A stretch of 43,232 bases of DNA, taken from positions 722,093 through 765,324 of the forward strand of contig RDEW01000031.1 in the NCBI GenBank assembly GCA_011109175.1, given 5' to 3'. This document shows positions 385 through 42,764 of the stretch, in pieces; positions within the stretch are counted from its first letter, which is position 1, and the number at the start of each line of letters is the position of its first letter. Below the pieces are notes generated by a model. It ran no database searches and was not told the origin of the DNA. It worked only from the letters and a program-made list of their open reading frames with translations. The stretch is from Dicyema japonicum. Lineage: Eukaryota; Animalia; Dicyemida. The position numbers were made by a program, and so were the translations under genes.

Positions 385-1072
385 TTCAGAAATAATCAAT
401 TCGGTTTTCGACCAGGACGGTCATGCGGTGATTGCTTATTTCATCTCAACTCCGAGTTATGCAAAACCAGAGAATCCAAATGTCTCCTGAATGTCATATG
501 TCTCGACATATAAAAATCATCTGACAGTGTTAACCAGAGCCATAATCGGTCAGTTATCTCGGACGGGAAGCACAAAAGAAATAGTGAATTGGGTGAAAGT
601 GTACCTAGAAGGAAGAAAATCGGATGTTAGATGCGGACGCAATTTTTCAAATATGATATTACTGAAGAGAGAAGTCTTACAAGGATCAATTTTATGCCCT
701 CTATTTTATAATGACCGGTTTCCCGTCTACGTTTACACCAAATACGAGATCTCTGATATATGCAGACGACGTGCTGCTGTCTGATGTGTTGAGATCGAGC
801 ATAATCTCAGAGAGGAGATTCAATGTGTACATGGAAAAGACAAAAGACTTGTGCGGTCTTCATGGTTTGAAACTGTCAGAAGAAAAATTTGGTGCAATGA
901 GGTTCTTCGGTCGGAATTGTAAAGGAAATCAGAAAGACTCCGTATGCGGAATCAACATTGTGAGCTACCTGAAGTATCTCGAAACAGCTTTTGAGAAATC
1001 TGGGACCACATTGTGCGATTTTAAACTCAAAAAAAGAAGGCTCACTATGCGATATTATGTATGAGGAAATTG
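385..1072 (+). mobile_element. Degenerate non-LTR retrotransposon RT fragment (family A, Jockey/I-like)
   Basis: Translation across frameshifts and stops: NQFGFRPGRSC, LNVICLDI*KSSDSV, REVLQGSILCPL, LIYADDVLL, YLKYLE. These are RVT_1-type motifs. Confidence 0.85.
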
Positions 1073-1929: not shown

Positions 1930-4900
1930 ATTCTTCCTCGATTTTCTAGGTTTGAGGATCATCTTCACAAAAATAATTGATTATAATATAATTAAATATG
2001 GTTGTTAGAAGAAAAATAGCAAATTCGAAAGCCACAAAGTTGAAAACCAACAGCTTTATTCGTCCTCCTGGATGTGCTACGGCTGAGTCGTTCACTTTGG
2101 AGCCCTCTAAACTTGAGAACAAGTCAACGACACACAACCACACTGTAGAGTTTAAACCAATGGACGAACAAAAAAGAGCAGATTCTACAGATAACAAGAC
2201 ACTATTGATCACAGTTCACTGTACTATGAGTTCGATAAAATTGCGAATATTCTACATTATTACGATCAATATGGATCTTTGAGGCTGAGCCACAAAAGAC
2301 CGGGCTCCTTCCGACTGGACTTCCGCGACAATAACCACATGGCCGAATATATGGAGGCCATAAATGATACCTGTCCTTTTGGAACTGACAACCACCACTT
2401 CAGAACGCTCATAACGAAACCTTGTGAGATTGTCCTCAGGAACCTCCCTTTCTGGATGAGTGAGAACGACCTCCTTGGTTACCTTCAGGAGATGGCACCT
2501 TCAACCTCGAAAATAACCCAAATGTCAAGAGGATCGCAGCTTATGCCTATGGCGAAGGCCACGGTTAGTAGTAATGTAGAAGCCTCATCGCTGATACGTT
2601 GTGGCTTCTAAATTTGATCGAGCAAGATCCTCTGTGAGTGGATGAAGAGGCCCCCTCCTTTCTGTTACAACTGCGAACGAATCGGTCATATCGCCGCACA
2701 TTGCAAGGATAAGAAAGAGATGCCTCAAGTGTGGAGGGGAACACGATCTTCTTATGTGTGAATTTTCATCGAACGTGGAGACAAATTGTATTAATTGTGG
2801 AGGATCAGGACATAATGCCCGCTACAGAAGATGTCCGGCTATAAGAGAGGCATCCAGGAAAATGATCCCCAGACAGACAGTGTCTAGAAATGAAGCAATC
2901 AAGCCAACAAAAGAGATGAAGTGGACCAATATTTCACATACTCAGGATGGATCGGTGGATCGGAGCGCTACACGTATACATGAGCAGAGCAAGGCAGGAG
3001 TCCCCGAGTCGGTATCTGGGAGCTAAATGAAATTATCGCACGTCTGAACAATCTATGTACACTGCTGAAAGTGGATTTATGGAGTCTGGTGGACCTGGCT
3101 ATGGAGAGCGCAGGCCACCAACAAAAACTATGAAAAGGAATTTGAAAGTAGTGCTGGTGAATGCCCGCTTCCTTGTGAAAAGGCATGATGAACTAGCGCT
3201 ACTTGTGAGGATTGCCAAGGTGGATGTCTTGGTAGTCAACGAAACGAAAATCAAACAAGGAAGAAAGTATAATATGAAAGGATATAACTCGGTGGACATT
3301 CCATGGAAAGATGGAGCAGTGGCTGGAACTAGAACTTCAATCTTTTTTCGTAAGGATGGCAAACACGGAACGACTGTATTGTACTGGCCGACGATTCGGA
3401 ATTGTGTCCGTCGATATTCAATGTGGAGGAACATGGATAAGCGTAGGAGGGCTATACTCTAAGGACTTGGCCCGATCTTCTGCGAAAGTTGTCCAATTTT
3501 TCGAAACAAACCCGATGTCGATCGTGGTAGGAGACCTGAATACTAAAAATACGAGCTACGGATGTTGCAAAAACAACGGGGACGGGCGACTCCTTGCAGA
3601 TCTGGTTAGCGAAATTGGAGTTGAAGTCTTGACGTCTGAGGAACCTAACCATTTCTCATACTATGGCGGTGACATGCTTGGATTGGCCATAGTGTCTCCA
3701 CAGCTCCTGGATCATGTAGACAGACCAAGGTTGTTTTGGGACATAGGGAGTGATCATATCCCTCAGGAAATAACTATAAACCTGGAACCAAACATTGCAG
3801 AAGATATTTTCCTATACTACGATACCTCGTCGATAGACTGGGTTCATTATCGTCATTATTTGTCGGAGACCTTATTAATGAAGACTATTTTTTTCTACAC
3901 CTAATGAGTTGGACGTTTTCAACTGGAACTATCCAAACACTATGCTGATGTATCTACGACTATATGGAAGAAGGTTTACTCGAAGAGCTTTCTGAAGAAC
4001 AAAGATTCTTGCCCACCTTTAATACGGGATCTTATTCGCGAGAGAAATACTCTGAAGGCGAAGCACAGACGATGTGTTTATCTGTGGGACAGGAAAATCC
4101 TGAAATATAGAATTGATGTGATACGAAAAATACTACAAAAAGCTTGGAGAGTAAACACCGAAAATAAATTAAAGAATGCAGCCTCGAAAGTTAATGGAGA
4201 ACCCGTTTCTGGAAAATGTACAGGAGGCTAACAAATGGAATTTAAAAGCAAAAAGCATTGATGGCCGATCAAGAGGGAAGGACAATTCCATTAAAAAAGT
4301 TCCTTCAGTAGTCAGAAATCAACTAGAAAATATACAGGGTGTTGATCCTATTAGTGTTATACATGAAAAATTTTCAGAGGAGATCCCTAATTCAATGGAC
4401 TACTCTATGGAAGATCTGGCAGAAGTCAGAACAGCGATTCGCGACTGCAAAAACAAGGCTCCCGGATTTGATGGCATCCTTATGATTATGTTCAAAGAAA
4501 GATCTGCATAAAGTTCACGATATTATGTATGAGGAAATTGGAGGATATCTCACGTGGTAGTCGGTGGAAGTTATTCGGATGGAATATCGTTTGAAAGAGG
4601 AGTGCCATAGGGATCTATTCTTAGCCCCCTGCTATTTAACATATTTATGGAAGACTTTCCGTCTCCACAGAACGTCAGAACCAAGCTAATGATTTACGCG
4701 GACGACATTTTAATCCTGGATTCATCTCTGAAGGCATACATCTCAGAGCGGTAACTAGGAGCGTTTATCGACGAAGTCCAAGGTTGGTGCGATCGGAGAG
4801 GCATGAAACTCTCGACGGAAAATAGGATAAGCATGCCGGGTAGACATCAGGAGGATCCCTACACTATCTGTATACCGAGAGTTTCATCATTGAAATACCT

Positions 4901-20825: not shown

Positions 20826-21410
20826 TTACAGTAAATTTCACATTCTTTTCAACCAAACAATTCATTACGAATTTTAACAAATTTTTATAAAACGAGATTT
20901 GCTATTTTTCACGATTGTCACTTTAATTTTGAGTTCTTGCATTTACATTTTCTTCACATTTAAACTTTACTTTAAACAAAATTCATTCCTAATGACAGTT
21001 CTCAGCAAAACGTTAATTCAAATGACAGAATACACGACAATTTTAACCAAACATTTCGTTAATAATTTTAACAAAATTTTTATAAAACGGATTTGCTATT
21101 TTTTCACGATTGTCACTTTAATTTTTGAGTTTCTTGCATTTACATTTTCTTCACAATCTAAACTTTACTTTAAACAAAAATTCATTCCTAATGACAGTCT
21201 CAGCAAACGTTAATTCAAATGACAGAATACACGACAATTTTAACCAAACATTTCGTTAATAATTTTAACAAAATTTTTATAAAACGGATTTGCTATTTTT
21301 TTCACGATTGTCACTTTAATTTTGAGTTCTTGCATTACATTTTCTTCACATTTAAACTTTACTTTAAACAAAAAATTTAACATTTCTCCATGATTGAAGA
21401 TTCTATTTTT
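20826..21410. repeat. AT-rich tandem repeat, ~194-bp unit, about 3 copies
   Basis: aacaaa(a)tttttataaaacg recurs at about 20876, 21069 and 21264. Copies are near-identical apart from homopolymer indels. Confidence 0.9.
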
Positions 21411-29259: not shown

Positions 29260-30590
29260 ACAAAAGTGCCGAACTTGATGGCCTTGAGATCGAGACTATA
29301 CTGGTCTCGCCGGATACAGTTTTGAAAGGTAATGGCTGATGATGGCCCAAAGCTTGACAAGTCCACGTGACACCACGTGTGCACAATACAGGCAAACGAC
29401 ACAACGATTTTCTGGAATTCCTCAGAGCTTGATATTTGGAAGATGAGAAGAAGTGGCCATGAATAGACTGGCATCCACGGCTTAACATTTTGTGAGGTAT
29501 TGGCTGATAGTCCAAAGCTCGACTGGACCAGGTGACACCGTGTGTACCCCATAGTGGCAAGCGTCATAACGATTTTATGGAATTTCCCAGAGCTTGACTT
29601 TTTGGGAAATGTGAAGAAGGGGTATGACTAGACTAGTCTTCCTCACTTAATTGTTCGTAAAATAATAGGTGATGACCCAAAGATCGACTCGACCGTGTGA
29701 CACCGCTTGTTCCAAAATACTTCTAAAGGCATAACAATTTACGTTAAAATTTTATAACGTGATTTTGACTATCTCAGAGCTTGATATTGGAAGATGTGAA
29801 AAAGAGGTCATGACTTGACTGGCATCCCCCGTATAAGAGTTTGTAATGTAATTGCTGAGGGTCCAAAGCTCGACTCGACCACGTGACACCGCGTGTGCCC
29901 TATCCCGGCATTCGGCATAACGATTTTGTGGAATTCCTCGAAGCTTGTTTTTTTGGTAGATGTGAAGAAGTTGTCATGTCTAGACTGGTCTCCCCCGCTT
30001 AATAGTTTGTAAGTTAATGGGAGATGGACAAAGCTCGACTCGACCACGTGTCACCGTGTGTGCCAAATACTTGCAAATGCATACAATTTCCGTAAAATTC
30101 TCAGAGCTTGGTTTTTAGGAGATGTTTAGAAATGGTCATGACTAGACTGGTCTCTTGTACTAATGGCTGATTGTCCAATGCTCGACTCAACCAAGTGACA
30201 CCGCGTGTGCCCCATACTGTCAAACGGCATAACGATTTTCTCGAATTTCTCAGAGCTTGGTTCTGGGAAGATGAGAAGAATGGGTCATGACTGACTGGTC
30301 ACACACGGATAACAGTTTTGGAAGGTAATGACTGATGTCCCACAGCTTGACTGAACCACTTGACACCGCGTGTGCCCCATACTAGAAAACGGTATAACGA
30401 TTTTCTAAAATTTTTTAGAGCTTGGTTTTGGGAAAATGTGAAGAAGTGGTCATGGCTAGAATGATCTCCCACGGATAACAGTTTTGGAAGGTAATGACTG
30501 ATAGCCCACAGCTTGACTAGACCACATGACACTACTGGCAAACGAGTAAAACGATTTTCGGGAATCTCTTCGATCTTAGTTTTTCTGGAG
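29260..30590. repeat. Diverged tandem satellite, ~165-166 bp unit, about 8 copies
   Basis: The gtgacacc-type anchor occurs at 29367, 29532, 29697, 29883, 30048, 30195, 30360 and 30526 (spacing 165, 165, 186, 165, 147, 165, 166). Recurring motifs aagctcgactcgaccacgtgacaccgcgtgtgc, gcataacgatttt and ctcagagcttg. Confidence 0.95.
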
Positions 30591-34559: not shown

Positions 34560-35720
34560 TGCCCTTTGCTTGTACACCCCCAGATGATCCAGTCTGTTAG
34601 ACTCCTCCACGTACTTCTAGTGATTGCGATTTTTGGAGGCTGTCTAAGTCCTTAGTTGTCTTCCATGTCTGAGATAGTCATCACGTTTTCGAGTTGTATA
34701 GCAGTAATGCATTGCATAGTCGTACATTTACTGGTCTTTAAACATGCACATATCTCAGTCACGTCGGTTTTAGTCTATTCAGTGCTATTGTTGACAATAT
34801 CTTCGTCAAATATGTCCCCAGTTCATATCCGTAGATGAGAGAGGGCAGTACAACTCTTTCAAAAATAATGATAAACGTCTCATTCAAATCGAGTTTCCCT
34901 GAACCCCAGAAGTACTTGATAAGCTCTTTTCTTCTTCATTTTGTCACCTTCTACATAATCCCTTTACATCCAAAACGGACACACAAAATAACGAAGATGA
35001 TCAACATTGCTGATACAACCCATTGTGTACTCCTGTTGAAAAAACTTTCTAAAGTGTGAAATTCGCATGACTTTCGACTTTTCCATAGAGAGACTTAAGC
35101 CGCAGGATTTGCTCCAGAGAATCTCTTCCAAAATTTCCCACAATCTTCTCTCAGACACTGCTGAAATATTTAAGACGTTCGATATCAGTACATCGTCCGC
35201 GTAAATAATCACGTTCCAGGGAACCAGGAAATTCCTCATAAATAAATTGAATAGCAGAGGACTCTTGCGTTTCTCACAAATGATTTTCTCCTCGACAGAA
35301 GTTTTCTTAACCAATCGATTAAAAGTTTTGGAATTTCAACTGCGACTAGCTGATAAACAGTTTTCATACAAGATATTATCAAAGCAGATGACAATTAGCT
35401 GATATCTGAAATTACGAGCTTTCTAAATTTCAGAATTTAAGATGAAAAACAACTTCTACATGATTTTCCTGGGCGAAAGCCCCAATGTTTCTTGCTGAGA
35501 AAATTCCATGATTCGATATGACCCGTAAGTTTTTGATAAATTAGCCTCTCCATGTTTTGGGGATTGAGTTAATCAGACTACTTGCTTTATTGCGCAGGGG
35601 AGTCTGTCTCGATTTTCCTGGCTTTTGGATTATCTGAATAATGGAGTCATTCTAAGCTTGCGGGACATATGGAAATTTGCTCCATATTAATTTCGATGTT
35701 TATTGATTTTTATATTTCTG
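34560..35720 (-). mobile_element. Degenerate LINE RT (relative of families A and B)
   Basis: IIQKPGKS, LFFILNSEI*KAR, SPLLFNLFM, IIYADDVL, GLSLSMEKS, LRYF and VVLPSLIYG. Confidence 0.85.
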
Positions 35721-36891: not shown

Positions 36892-37144
36892 TCTTCGAAC
36901 CAGTGGCAGTCGAAACAACAGGAATAATTGGAAGCAGCTCACTGACGCTGATAAACAGGCGAAGAAAAATAACGATAGGAGAAAAAAAAGTTGGCTCATT
37001 GAGGGAAAATGCGTTTTCAATTATGAGAGCAGCCAGCAGTTGTTAACTGTTAGATTTTTCGTTTAAATAAAATTCAGTTAAATTAAAAATAAAATTTTAA
37101 ACTGTTTTTATAAAATAAAAAAAATAAATAAATATAATAAATAA
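36892..37144 (+). mobile_element. CRE-like retrotransposon extreme 3' end with A-rich tail
   Basis: FEPVAVETTGIIG...SIMRAASS, homologous in position to the 8180-8380 motifs, followed by aaaataaaaaaaataaataaatataataaataa. Confidence 0.6.
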
Positions 37145-37171
37145 GCGCTCTGGAACTGTGATTTTCTGGTG

Positions 37172-40100
37172 ATGAGTAGGAAAGACAATAGTAACATTAA
37201 AGTGGCAGTTAGGTAAGAATTTATTTACTATATATCAGAGTAAGACCATTAAGCAAAAACTGAATTAGAATTTCAATGTCCATTATATGTTGAAGTATTA
37301 AAGGAAACCTCACAGATCATGATAGGAGGTAATAAGTTTTACACATTCGACCATGTGTTTGATACAAACTCTAAACAGATAGAAATCTACAACCAGTTCG
37401 TCCATAATCTGATAGAAAGGTACTAATTTTAGTTTATATAGTTTTTTCGGCGGTTACAATGCTACTGTGATTGCCTACGGTCAAGTTGACGATTTTTTAA
37501 CGTTTAGACCGGTCTGGTAAATCCTACACTCAATGGGATCATCACTAGATCTCGAACTCTCCGAAGATCTTGTAGGAATAATCCCACGTGCTTTAAGTCA
37601 TTTGTACGCAGAAATTGAGAAGGGACAAGATATCTTATATCAAGTATCGATTCAGTTTGTTGAAGTATGTGACAATTATTATTATAACAGCTTACAATGA
37701 GGATATTAATGATCTTTTGGACTCTGGGTGCAAGAAGAAAATAAGATCCACGAAGACAACCAGGGAGGAATATATCTGATGGGGACAACTACCAAAATCG
37801 TCAGCAGCATTAAGGAGGTCGGATGAATTTTTGAAAAGTAGGTAACTGACCTGCTCAAAGGTGGTTGCCTTCTAAGGACAACCGGGAGCACCAATATGAA
37901 TGAAAAGTCATCCAGATCTCACATTCAATATTCTCTCTAAAATAAAGGAGAGGCCCGTACAAGACGGAAGCACCAATTTCAAGCAAGTCCTTACATCTAA
38001 ACTTAACTTTGTGGACTTGGCTGGGTCTGAACGACTAAAGCGGACCGGTGCCACAGGGAATCGAGCAAAAGAGGGATATCAATAAACTACGGCCTGGTAG
38101 ATCATTCATGACTATTCAGTTCGCTTTGGGCAATGTAATCTCTGCTTTGGCTGAAAAATCCAGGATTGGAACTTATGTGCCTTACAGAGACTCAAAGTTG
38201 ACTAGAATTTTGCAGGACTCTTTGGGAGGGAACAGTAGAACAATTATGTTGGCCTGTGTATCTCCCACTATGAGAGACTGGACGGAGACATCAGGAACTT
38301 TGGAGTACGCTAAGAAAGCCAAAATATTGAAAACAAAGCTGTGATGAACCAGGACTTGAAAATGCAAGAAATTGCATTCCTAAAGATCATATATTAGAGC
38401 TTAAGAGAGAACTAAATATTGTATTACGTTGATTTACCACAGTATAAGTGTGGGGGTTACGAAATCCGTATAAAGGAATTGGAGGAGGAGTTAATGAAGG
38501 TCCAGATGGAGAATGAAAGACTTGTTCAGCACAATGAAGATTCAAAAAATGAAAAGGAGGACACAAAATTAGAAGAAAATTTGAATAACTTGCTTAAACG
38601 GAAGCAGCTGGAGGTATTTTATATAGTGAAATCAGATTGAGTATTTAAAAAGTATAAACAAAGAAACAACTTCAATCAATGCTAAAAGTATAATATATTA
38701 TGACCATTAGCACCAAAACGGAATACTAAAGAATTGGTGGATACACGAATAAAAATGATTGATGAGTGGATTTGCAAATTTTCCGGACTACAAGTAAAAA
38801 TAGACGACATTGAGAAGGATACGTTCAGTTGGATTAAAGTAGCTTGTATGGGAACTTATAGAAACATAATTTTGTGAAACGACGGATTTTAAAGATTAAA
38901 GAAAATTTGGATAAAATTCCCTCTCATAAAACAGTTAAATCAATTTTTATATTTAAGACACAAATTGCCTCCCAAAAAATTAAACTTGAGGAGTTATCGA
39001 CGAGTTTGGAATTTTTAGTTTGAAAGAATAGATGACACAAAATTGCAGTTGAATCATTACCTCTCAAAGAAAGTAAACCTGTGTTGTTTATATTAGAATG
39101 ACTTGAGTTCGGTGGAGGAGTTTGTTACCTTTATGATGGAAGGATTTATTGAAGATAAGCAAATAAAACCTATGTTGATAAATATGATGGCCCAGATGTT
39201 GAATATGTTTGTTTGTGTTGAATATGTAGAACGTACAATTGGAACACAGCAAGAATGAAGGGGCTCTTCTAAGGGCTAGGATATCTAAACTGAACGCTCG
39301 GAGTAGTGTGCGAGCACAACTACTTGGAGATCTTGTCTCTATGATGTCACGAGAGGATGACATACTCGATATTGACCTTAGTCTGATGACAGGAGATTTC
39401 TCTGAAGATAATTCCGAAATGGAAAAAATGTCTGAAAAAGAAAAGACATGGTTTTTTACATTATTACTTTGCAGTGAATCTAACAACGAGACTGTCGATA
39501 TACAGGATAACTATATGTCTGAATTAGACGTATTCGAATATAACGTTTGCAATACGTTTAAGACTAGAATAATCTTCGTCGACGCAGGCTGACCTATTTA
39601 CCAGAGATGATCAAAGATATCCCCATACAAAGGTCAGCTAATACAAGATTAGACGATTCATATGGGTTTATTTTCGACTAATCCTAGAACTGATAGTCTA
39701 ATCAATAAATCTAGGAGGTCCCAAGACGATGACGTCCTCGATTTTGACCATAGTACTATAGCTGGAGATTTCTCGGACGACAATTTTGAAGTATTTAAAT
39801 TGTTTAATGTCAGATAAAGAGTTATTACTTTGCAGTGCATCTAACAACGAGACTGTCGATATACAGGATAACTATATGTCTGAATTAGACGGATTCGAAT
39901 ATAACGTTTGCAATACGTTTAAGACTAGAATAATCTTCGTCGACGCAGGCTGACCTATTTACCAAAGATGATCCAAGACATTGCCATGCAAATGACAGCC
40001 AATACAGGATTAGACGAATCATATGGGTTTATTTTCGACTAATCCTAGAACTGAGAGTCTAATCAATAAATCTAGGAGGTCCCAAGACGATGACGTCCTC

Positions 40101-42687
40101 GATTTTGACCATAGTACTATAGCTGGAGATTTCTCGGACGACAATTTTGAAGGTATTTAATTGTTTAATGTCAGATAAAGAGTTATTACTTTGCAGTGCA
40201 TCTAACAACGAGACTGTCGATATACAGGATAACTATATGTCTGAATTAGACGTATTCGAATATAACGTTTGCAATACGTTTAAGACTAGAATAATCTTCG
40301 TCGACGCAGGCTGACCTATTTACAAAGATGATCCAAGACATTGCCATGCAAATGACAGCCAATACAGGATTAGACGAATCATATGGGTTTATTTTCGACT
40401 AATCCTAGAACTGAGAGTCTAATCAATAAATCTAGGAGGTCCCAAGACGATGACGTCCTCGATTTTGACCATAGTACTATAGCTGGAGATTTCTCGGACG
40501 ACAATTTTGAAGGTATTTAATTGTTTAATGTCAGATAAAGAGTTATTACTTTGCAGTGCATCTAACAACGAGACTGTCGATATACAGGATAACTATATGT
40601 CTGAATTAGACGGATTCGAATATAACGTTTGCAATACGTTTAAGACTAGAATAATCTTCGTCGACGCAGGCTGACCTATTTACCAGAGATGATCAAAGAT
40701 ATCCCCATACAAAGGTCAGCTAATACAAGATTAGACGAATCATATGGGTTTATTTTCGACTAATCCTAGAACTGATAGTTTAATCAATAAATCTAGTATG
40801 TCCAAAGACGATGACGTCCTCATTGACCATAGTACTATAGCTGGAGATTTCTCGGACGACAATTTTGAAGGTATTTAATGTTTAATGTCAGATAAAAGAG
40901 TTATTACTTTGCAGTGCATCTAACAACGAGACTGTCGATATACAGGATAAACTATATGTCTGAATTAGACGGATTCGAATATAACGTTTGCAATACGTTT
41001 AAGACTAGAATAATCTTCGTCGACGCAGGCTGACCTATTTACCAGAGATGATCAAAGATTATCCCATGCAAAGGTCAGCCAATACAGATTAGACGATCAT
41101 ATGGGTTTATTTTCGACTAATCCTAGAACTGATAGTTTAATCAATAAATCTAGTATTGCCCAGACGATGACGTCCTCGATTTTGACCATAGTACTATAGC
41201 TGGAGATTTCTCGACGACAATTTTGAAGTATTTAATTGTTTAATGTCAGATAAAGAGTTATTACTTTGCAGTGCATCTAACAACGAGACTGTCGATATAC
41301 AGGATAACTATATGTCTGAATTAGACGTATTCGAATATAACGTTTGCAATACGTTTAGACTAGAATAATCTTCGTCGACGCAGGCTGACCTATTTACCAA
41401 AGATGATCAAAGATATTGCCATGCAAATGACAGCCAATACAGGATTAGACGAATCATATGGGTTTATTTTCGACTAATCCTAGAACTGATAGTTTAATCA
41501 ATAAATCTAGTATGTCCAAAGACGATGACGTCCTCGATTTTGACCATAGTTCTATAGCTGGAGATTTCTCGGACGACAATTTTGAAGGTATTTAATTGTT
41601 TAATGTCAGATAAAGAGTTATTACTTTGCAGTGCATCTAACAACGAGACTGTCGATATACAGGATAACTATATGTCTGAATTAGACGTATTCGAATATAA
41701 CGTTTGCAATACGTTTAAGACTAGAATAATCTTCGTCGACGCAGGCTGACCTATTACCAAAGATGATCAAAGATATTTGCCATGCAAATGACAGCCAATA
41801 CAGGATTAGACGAATCATATGGGTTTAATTTTCGACTAATCCTAGAACTGATAGTTTAATCAATAAATCTAGTATGTCCAAAGACGATGACGTCCTCGAT
41901 TTTGACCATAGTACTATAGCTGGAGATTTCTCGGACGACAATTTTGAAGGTATTTAATTGTTTAATGTCAGTAAAGAGTATTACTTTGCAGTGCATCTAA
42001 CAACGAGACTGTCGATATACAGGATAACTATATGTCTGAATTAGACGGATTCGAATATAACGTTTGCAATACGTTTAAGACTAGAATAATCTTCGTCGAC
42101 GCAGGCTGACCTATTTACCAAAAGATGATCAAAGATATTGCCATGCAAAATGACAGCCAATACAGGATTAGAACGAATCATATGGGTTTATTTTCGACTA
42201 ATCCTAGAACTGATAGTTTAATCAATAAATCTAGTATGTCCAAAGACGATGACGTCCTCGATTTTGACCATAGTACTATAGCTGGAGATTTTGGACGACA
42301 ATTTTGAGGTATTTAATTGTTTAATGTCAGATAAAGAGTTATTACTTTGCAGTGCATCTAACAACGAGACTGTCGATATACAGGATAACTATATGTCTGA
42401 ATTAGACGTATTCGAATATAACGTTTGCAATACGTTTAAGACTAGAATAATCTTTCGTCGACGCAGGCTGACCTATTTACCAAAGATGATCAAAGATATT
42501 GCCATGCAAATGACAGCCAATACAGGATTAGACGAATCATATGGGTTTATTTTCGACTAATCCTAGAACTGATAGTTTAATCAATAAATCTAGTATGTCC
42601 CAAGACGATGACGTCCTCGATTTTGACCATAGTACTATAGCTGGAGATTTCTCGGAGGACGATGACGAGTTTGATAAAAAAAATTGA
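37172..42687 (+). CDS. Kinesin-4 family motor (KIF21/KIF4/KIF27-like): N-terminal motor, coiled coil, long repeat tail; many micro-introns
   Basis: IKVAVR|[23 protein letters not shown]|TG(S)[40 protein letters not shown](I)SINYGL|[40 protein letters not shown]. Introns at 37213-37238, 37420-37441, 37485-37507, 37665-37690, 37818-37841, 38097-38119, 38421-38442 and 38614-38635, with more likely in the stalk. About ten 1-nt indels but no substitution stops seen in the motor domain. The motor call is secure; the stalk exon model is approximate. Confidence 0.9.
39462..42657 (+). repeat. 361-bp tandem array (~8.8 copies), each unit 3 exons + 3 micro-introns encoding 98 aa
   Basis: gacctatt anchor at 39591, 39952, 40313, 40673, 41032, 41387, 41748, 42108 and 42470. 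Unit 39929-40289 splices with no correction (introns 40027-40048, 40153-40174, 40267-40289). Confidence 0.97.
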
Positions 42688-42764
42688 AGATTAATTAAAT
42701 TTTGTTAAAAGTTGATTTTCTTTATAAAATTATTATTCAGTTTATTATTATATAAAAAAATGTC

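Follow-up and report, generated by a model that had tools for sequence, protein, structure and literature searches.

The window analysed here, 43,232 nucleotides of contig RDEW01000031.1 (positions 722,093 to 765,324 of the forward strand) from the Dicyema japonicum assembly GCA_011109175.1, contains a gene with an N-terminal kinesin motor, which starts at ATG 37172. Directly 3′ of the motor part, on the same (plus) strand, lies the single long tandem array of the window, placed by Tandem Repeats Finder at 39461-42660 with a period of 361 bp, 8.9 copies, 96% matches and 1% indels. A preliminary description, made from the sequence alone, had proposed that this apparent satellite is a spliced, in-frame coding repeat that forms a giant kinesin-4 tail. 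The features of the locus, with exons and introns as predicted from the sequence, are these:

37172-38340, plus strand: kinesin motor exons, with micro-introns at 37213-37238, 37420-37441, 37485-37507, 37665-37690, 37818-37841 and 38097-38119.
38341-39229, plus strand: neck and stalk exons (about 250 aa, partly heptad-like), with micro-introns at 38421-38442, 38614-38635, 38688-38710, 38839-38861, 38934-38957, 39073-39096 and 39207-39229.
39230-39544, plus strand: unique exon through which the array is entered, with a diverged exon-b copy and the first copy of exon c among its contents.
39545-42422, plus strand: eight full units of 356-361 bp, each with intron 1 (23 nt), exon a (98 nt), intron 2 (22 nt), exon b (104 nt), intron 3 (22 nt) and exon c (92 nt).
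39906-40266, plus strand: reference clean unit, with intron 1 at 39906-39928, exon a at 39929-40026, intron 2 at 40027-40048, exon b at 40049-40152, intron 3 at 40153-40174 and exon c at 40175-40266.
42423-42687, plus strand: terminal partial unit, with intron 1, exon a, intron 2 and a terminal exon b that ends in the stop TGA 42685-42687.
42694-42699, plus strand: ATTAAA hexamer 7 nt past the stop, which may be a poly(A) signal.

The frame model for the upstream part of the gene was built by hand, guided by kinesin motifs and by the indels of short-read contigs, and needed 11 small corrections (11 small indel errors in the 2.4 kb of conserved coding sequence between 37172 and 39544). The rebuilt coding sequence has 13 GT-AG introns of 22-26 nt each, T-rich in composition, and gives one reading of 691 residues that ends at 39544 on a whole codon, abutting the first intron of the array. 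A least-cost parser that allowed any GT-AG pair of 20-28 nt together with frameshifts was dropped because it avoided stops by placing spurious 28-nt ‘introns’ within the conserved motor, and a ciliate or other non-standard code was ruled out, since the standard code translates the motor and the window fits D. japonicum. In the corrected reading the P-loop (GQTxSGKS), switch I (NEKSSRSH) and switch II (DLAGSE) are all intact; a motif scan places the SSRSH of switch I at 37908 and DLAGSE at 38014. Pfam PF00225 matches two uninterrupted pieces of the motor, with E-values of 1e-24 and 1e-8. By its P-loop, its two switch motifs and its match to PF00225, the product belongs to the kinesin superfamily.

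Its closest relatives appear to lie in the kinesin-4 family (KIF4, KIF7/27 and KIF21/KLP-12), as the preliminary description had supposed. Among solved structures, the piece encoded by 38120-38337 matched KIF7 best (86 bits), followed by KLP-12 (7x4n, 80 bits), KIF4 (78), OSM-3 (77) and kinesin-1 (74). The entry 7x4n, the kinesin-4 KLP-12 of Caenorhabditis elegans (PMC9451533), was also the top match for the piece 37927-38076, and together with KIF4 it was the only structure to reach E < 1e-3 for the piece 37262-37417; the piece 37533-37664 had no match among the solved structures. The best hits agree and support the kinesin-4 assignment by modest margins, the placement being one by best hits of short pieces and not by a tree. 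Within the unique exon there is a 24-nt GT-AG piece, GTTTTTTACATTATTACTTTGCAG, at 39451-39474, the removal of which would keep the frame; it may be an optional or a real micro-intron. The last 14 bases of this piece are the beginning of the repeated part.

The D. japonicum assembly was made by merging Platanus with PacBio/Falcon sequence and used four Nextera mate-pair libraries; the genome has a GC content of 36.7%, 49% repeats and an abundance of LINEs (PMC6736024), and the GC of the window agrees with this. We compared the window with contigs from four Illumina runs (X1 to X4) over 37100-39905, a range that includes about 1.2 units of the array; the rest of the array and the 3′ end of the gene were reached by way of loose contig ends. 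The contigs retain the introns, with no joints across them, and carry loose ends of Nextera adaptor sequence, which fits the four mate-pair libraries, so that the runs represent DNA. They fall into two classes at this locus, one being the same as the window apart from gaps, the other differing from it by 5-7%. The length differences of the same-haplotype contigs relative to the window are +2 nt over 37606-37855, +2 over 38136-38421, 0 over 38413-38756, -1 at 39019 and +1 at 39196, and in every stretch covered they equal the corrections made in the frame model. Since the same-haplotype contigs carry the bases that the reading frame needs, the upstream frame breaks in the window are long-read consensus errors and the gene is intact. 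Errors of this kind may break frames anywhere in the assembly, and calls of ‘pseudogene’ or ‘dead motor’ need a check against short reads.

When the units of the array are anchored on the first, 23-nt GT-AG segment, there are nine unit starts spaced 356-361 bp apart, and three GT-AG segments are present in all units. In the clean unit these segments lie at 39906-39928 (23 nt, with its copy at 40267-40289), 40027-40048 (22 nt) and 40153-40174 (22 nt), and what lies between them (39929-40026, 40049-40152 and 40175-40266) adds up to 294 nt, or 98 codons, without a stop. The earlier arithmetic (361-67=294 nt) is therefore reproduced, and so, residue for residue, is the earlier uncorrected translation of 39929-40289 into 98 amino acids. 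The remaining frames of the spliced clean unit are closed, with 7 and 13 stops in the other two forward frames and 2-7 stops in the reverse frames. If the first segment is retained, the frame closes at TGA 39590-39592, as had been stated for an unspliced unit. When any GT-AG pieces of 21-26 nt were allowed to be removed, 10 of 1000 dinucleotide-preserving shuffles of the unit yielded an open frame, and the real unit yielded none on its reverse strand; the stop-free spliced unit is thus beyond what chance would readily provide.

The spliced frame of the array is continuous with the conserved gene where the array is entered and with a C-terminal end where it is left. The entry, which had been claimed to be in frame from a unique exon with a diverged precursor motif, is as described, the exon being 39230-39544. 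At the exit, likewise as claimed, the last partial unit keeps the frame of the array and runs into ...DDDEFDKKN followed by TGA 42685-42687; as assembled, this terminal unit has one extra T (at about 42458) that interrupts exon a. Distinct unit variants, of A and B types, are interleaved along the array. Non-coding satellite DNA would have no frame or gene context beyond chance, which is not what is found here. The array has the composition of a multi-exon coding repeat, in that complete exons and introns make up each unit and the clean unit, once its introns are removed, is open and a multiple of three in length.

The three segments of the unit have the properties expected of dicyemid-type micro-introns, namely a length of 22-26 nt, GT...AG ends, a T-rich interior and a frame that closes on retention, and are candidates for removal by splicing. 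They start with GTT, GTT and GTA and end with TAG, TAG and CAG, in keeping with the GT(A/T) starts and YAG ends of the gene's own introns, and their lengths (23, 22 and 22 nt) lie inside the range of the gene's own introns. Scored for intron versus exon composition, they gave 0.01, 0.16 and 0.27, compared with -0.04 to 0.31 for the 13 upstream introns (leave-one-out), and these three scores exceed those of 82-97% of exonic GT-AG decoys. No further splice signal can be demanded from the sequence, as in published logos the signals of D. japonicum are reduced to GTa...AG (PMC13644364). All 16 substitutions common to at least two units are in exons and none is in the 67 intron bases, a pattern that fits constrained micro-introns, with the proviso that the changes are linked and few. 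There is also a strong-looking acceptor, ttgcag (ttattactttgcag; 40175-40196), 22 nt past the acceptor of intron 3 in every unit. A 44-nt intron 3 ending at this site was considered and rejected as the main form, since it would leave 272 nt per unit and lead to an early stop. On the strength of the frame, its junctions and the intron-like segments, we consider it probable that the array undergoes splicing and that its translation gives the kinesin an in-frame repeat tail.

One way for this conclusion to fail would be for the array to be an assembly artefact, produced by expansion or mis-joining of a single-copy three-exon end. The long-read consensus is noisy and has many indels, and over the array entry (39356-39449) there is no listed Illumina contig of the window's own version, so that the entry rests on the long-read assembly. 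The array itself, however, is present in the short-read data. The 361-bp back-joint, from 39838 to 39478, is found in Illumina contigs of three runs (X2, X3 and X4). The array contigs overall have about 5-7 times the depth of the window's single-copy contigs, and the contig of one unit variant, of the type found in six assembled units, has about 5 times that depth (670 versus 119-135 in X4). Contigs of X2 and X3 pass from a unit into GATGACGAGTTTGATAAAAAAAATTGAAGA, which is the unique 3′ exit of the window, with the same run of eight A residues before the TGA. The back-joint in three runs, the excess depth and the contigs that reach the unique 3′ end together establish that the array is real and not an assembly expansion, and the interleaving of A and B units also speaks against an artefact. 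The read-depth check that had been proposed as a possible refutation has therefore come out in favour of the array, and an artefactual origin, largely refuted, is very improbable.

Several observations do weigh against a translated tail, the lack of same-version short-read cover at the array entry among them. As assembled, only two of the nine units are open (39906-40266 and 41342-41701); the other seven are frame-broken, with about 27 small indels among them (1-7 per unit), and indels are roughly twice as dense there as in the coding sequence upstream (about 0.9% versus about 0.5%). A search for sequencing runs with two clean units, restricted to RNA-Seq libraries, listed none. The substitutions that distinguish the units comprise 4 synonymous and 12 non-synonymous changes, with 19.5% synonymous expected at random, so that the differences between units look neutral and give no signal of selection on the repeat peptide. 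The open frame across units is for its part no independent proof of translation, as the youth of the array or homogenisation of its units can explain it. The ttgcag acceptor, if used, would lengthen intron 3 to 44 nt, shift the frame and bring about an early stop, and is a possible source of non-productive isoforms.

These points can be combined into an alternative in which the array is transcribed with the kinesin gene and is not productively read through. It would then be a young, neutral 3′ expansion of variable copy number, and the product would be cut short after no repeats or only a few by real frameshifts in some units, use of the ttgcag acceptor, retained introns or premature polyadenylation. 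Such an outcome would account for the seven broken units and the neutral-looking substitutions, and each unit offers the means for it in the alternative acceptor and in an AATAAA within exon b. Against this, nearly every indel of the array is a single base in a short homopolymer, which is the type of error proven upstream to belong to the assembly, and the frame breaks of the array look like those upstream errors. In unit 1 an Illumina contig aligns without gaps over 39658-39868 with six mismatches, the pattern that would be produced if a consensus intron 3 were compared with a paired one-base loss and gain in the window. The hexamers need not end transcripts either, because AATAAA or ATTAAA occurs nine times within the upstream exons, which are necessarily transcribed through, motor exons included, and a 44-nt intron would be atypical of a gene with introns of 22-26 nt. 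We regard a non-productive array as unlikely.

The main reason for leaving a sizeable probability with the alternatives to a translated tail is the second version of the locus. Contigs of the divergent class (5-7%) extend over 37100-39525 at 2-3 times the depth of the window's own version. This version is in frame, since the indels in its motor restore the frame and its gap of 15 nt at 39415-39429 leaves the frame unchanged, and beyond 39525, still within the first exon c, it no longer follows the window. From there its open frame continues on a contig of 1869 nt, and that continuation has no match within the window. The deeper version may lack the array, which also counts against the proposed tail; candidate identities for it are an allele, a paralogue and a co-infecting sister species. 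The loose end of an X1 contig at 39414 consists of a b′-like exon, then AGAGG, GTATTTGATTGTTTAATGTCAG and AAA. The 22-mer resembles intron 3, with one difference from that of the array, and this contig indicates that a related exon-intron unit exists outside the window's version, somewhere in the sample.

On this basis the window could represent a haplotype that is both minor and degenerate, or the version of a minor species infecting the same host, and a non-functional satellite would there have arisen from the last exons of the gene, the working kinesin being the deeper divergent version with another C-terminus. The greater depth of the divergent contigs, the frame that they keep and their departure at 39525 onto the 1869-nt contig, whose sequence the window does not have, would all be expected if that were so. 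On the other hand, same-haplotype Illumina contigs show the window's version to be intact in all the stretches that they cover, every unit preserves the splice-like segments perfectly, and the array closes with a proper acidic C-terminus and a stop. The X1 contig with the b′-like exon and the intron-3-like 22-mer further points to related units beyond the window's version. We consider a degenerate locus more unlikely still than an array that is transcribed and not read through, and return to the translated tail as the favoured explanation.

If the array is translated, the predicted product has 691 + 8x98 + 72 = 1,547 residues, with 26 introns in the array (8x3+2). The preliminary estimate of about 870 aa and roughly 26 introns thus holds as arithmetic for the introns, and for a tail of about 856 residues, with the qualification that two of the nine units are open as assembled. 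The repeat had been described as acidic and disordered, and its composition agrees. The unit has 21 Asp and Glu residues versus 9 Lys and Arg, a net charge of -12 and a pI of 4.15, and its mean hydropathy of 0.411 is below the charge-hydropathy boundary (0.457), hence on the side of disordered proteins, so that disorder is predicted on composition alone. Hydrophobic residues make up 30% of the unit, which has one basic patch (LRRRRL, KSRRS) and three acidic-aromatic motifs. With an 89-aa open reading frame (ORF) formed by exon c, read-through and exon a as the query, an exhaustive HMMER search against 1.84 billion representative proteins returned no hits, and so no transcript-derived fragment either; look-alikes of the exon 39230-39544 in the ESM Atlas were below the level of recognition, and a single-sequence AF2 model of it was uninformative (mean pLDDT 41).

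We propose the following scheme. The 361-bp ‘satellite’ would be the 3′ coding part of one kinesin-4-like gene that runs from ATG 37172 to TGA 42685-42687, in which a block of three exons (98, 104 and 92 nt) and three GT-AG introns of 22-23 nt was amplified in tandem to about nine copies. The motif GDFS[ED][DE] of the unit is also found in the unique entry exon and in the terminal exon, which suggests that the array began when two older exon-b copies crossed over unequally, and this is probably how it was amplified. As the spliced block measures 294 nt, each added copy would be in frame. The messenger RNA would encode a motor of about 340 aa, a stalk of about 250 aa and about 860 aa of acidic 98-residue repeats, with the original C-terminus last. 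Splicing of the array, its inclusion in a single transcript with the motor exons, translation and a function for the product are all predicted here from DNA. The likeliest role of the tail would be a flexible, multivalent one in partner docking or regulation, with about 9-10 sets of motifs per chain.

A broader proposal may be put forward more tentatively. Introns of about 23 nt would let blocks of exons and introns amplify as satellites do, and a kinesin-4 motor would in this way have acquired a lineage-specific tail of about 860 aa and variable copy number, with about ten sets of acidic-aromatic docking motifs, in place of the usual tail. The two versions of the locus, one entering the array and the other leaving at 39525, would then represent a polymorphism for the presence or absence of the tail or a very recent difference between species. 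We regard this combination as possible but doubtful. If the array is spliced as predicted, the locus would be a compact example of ultra-short introns making a multi-exon block behave as a satellite, an array that repeat finders and gene predictors would both mislabel. Unequal crossing-over could then alter the length of a protein within a conserved motor gene, and the canonical tail of a kinesin would have been replaced by a multivalent acidic repeat.

Elsewhere in the window there are fragments of retroelements, which fit the LINE-rich genome of D. japonicum (PMC6736024), and shorter tandem repeats:

3311-3901, plus strand: endonuclease-reverse transcriptase fragment (PF14529, E 4e-9).
34967-35314, minus strand: reverse transcriptase fragment (PF00078, E 2e-7).
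711-1061, plus strand: ORF with a YADD motif.
20847-21374: tandem repeat of 197 bp, 2.7 copies (93% matches).
29363-29705: tandem repeat of 165 bp, 2.1 copies.
30029-30300: tandem repeat of 149 bp, 1.8 copies.

The repeats at 29363-29705 and 30029-30300 have similar units and have short minus-strand ORFs in common.

Three known systems invite comparison. The first is kinesin-4 itself (KIF4, KIF7/KIF27, KIF21/KLP-12), with which the Dicyema protein shares an N-terminal motor with intact P-loop, switch I and switch II, and a coiled-coil-like stalk past the neck. The two differ beyond that point. The Dicyema stalk would have only about 250 aa, and about nine acidic 98-aa repeats with no detectable relatives would replace the known tail domains. 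In a Pfam search with eight pieces of the stalk and tail, no family at E<=0.1 was above its cut-off, and neither a WD40 nor a Cys-rich domain was found. The predicted protein thus appears to have no canonical kinesin-4 tail module, be it the WD40 domain of KIF21 or the Cys-rich domain of KIF4, although such modules mark subgroups and not the family as a whole.

A coding tandem repeat made of several exons in frame is known from LPA KIV-2, where each unit measures 5.6 kb and 1-40 units are present (PMC11462820). The Dicyema unit, known from DNA sequence, differs in being 361 bp long with three exons per unit, and in having no recognisable folded domain. It is because its introns are 22-23 nt in length that the unit stays at 361 bp and the array looks like an ordinary satellite.

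Protein-coding genes of trypanosomatids are nearly intron-free, so the repeats of the Leishmania kinesin K39 would be unspliced. K39 has a long tandem-repeat non-motor part with repeats of 39 aa (PMC6355020), a plan like that predicted for the Dicyema protein; its repeat is shorter and has no sequence relation to that of Dicyema. The preliminary description knew of no kinesin with the architecture proposed here. In view of K39 and LPA KIV-2, which provide a repeat-tailed kinesin and a multi-exon coding repeat, that statement was too strong for the separate elements. What would be new is their combination, in which a kinesin-4-type motor, lacking a canonical tail, is joined to a three-exon block with introns of 22-23 nt that is repeated on the scale of a satellite.

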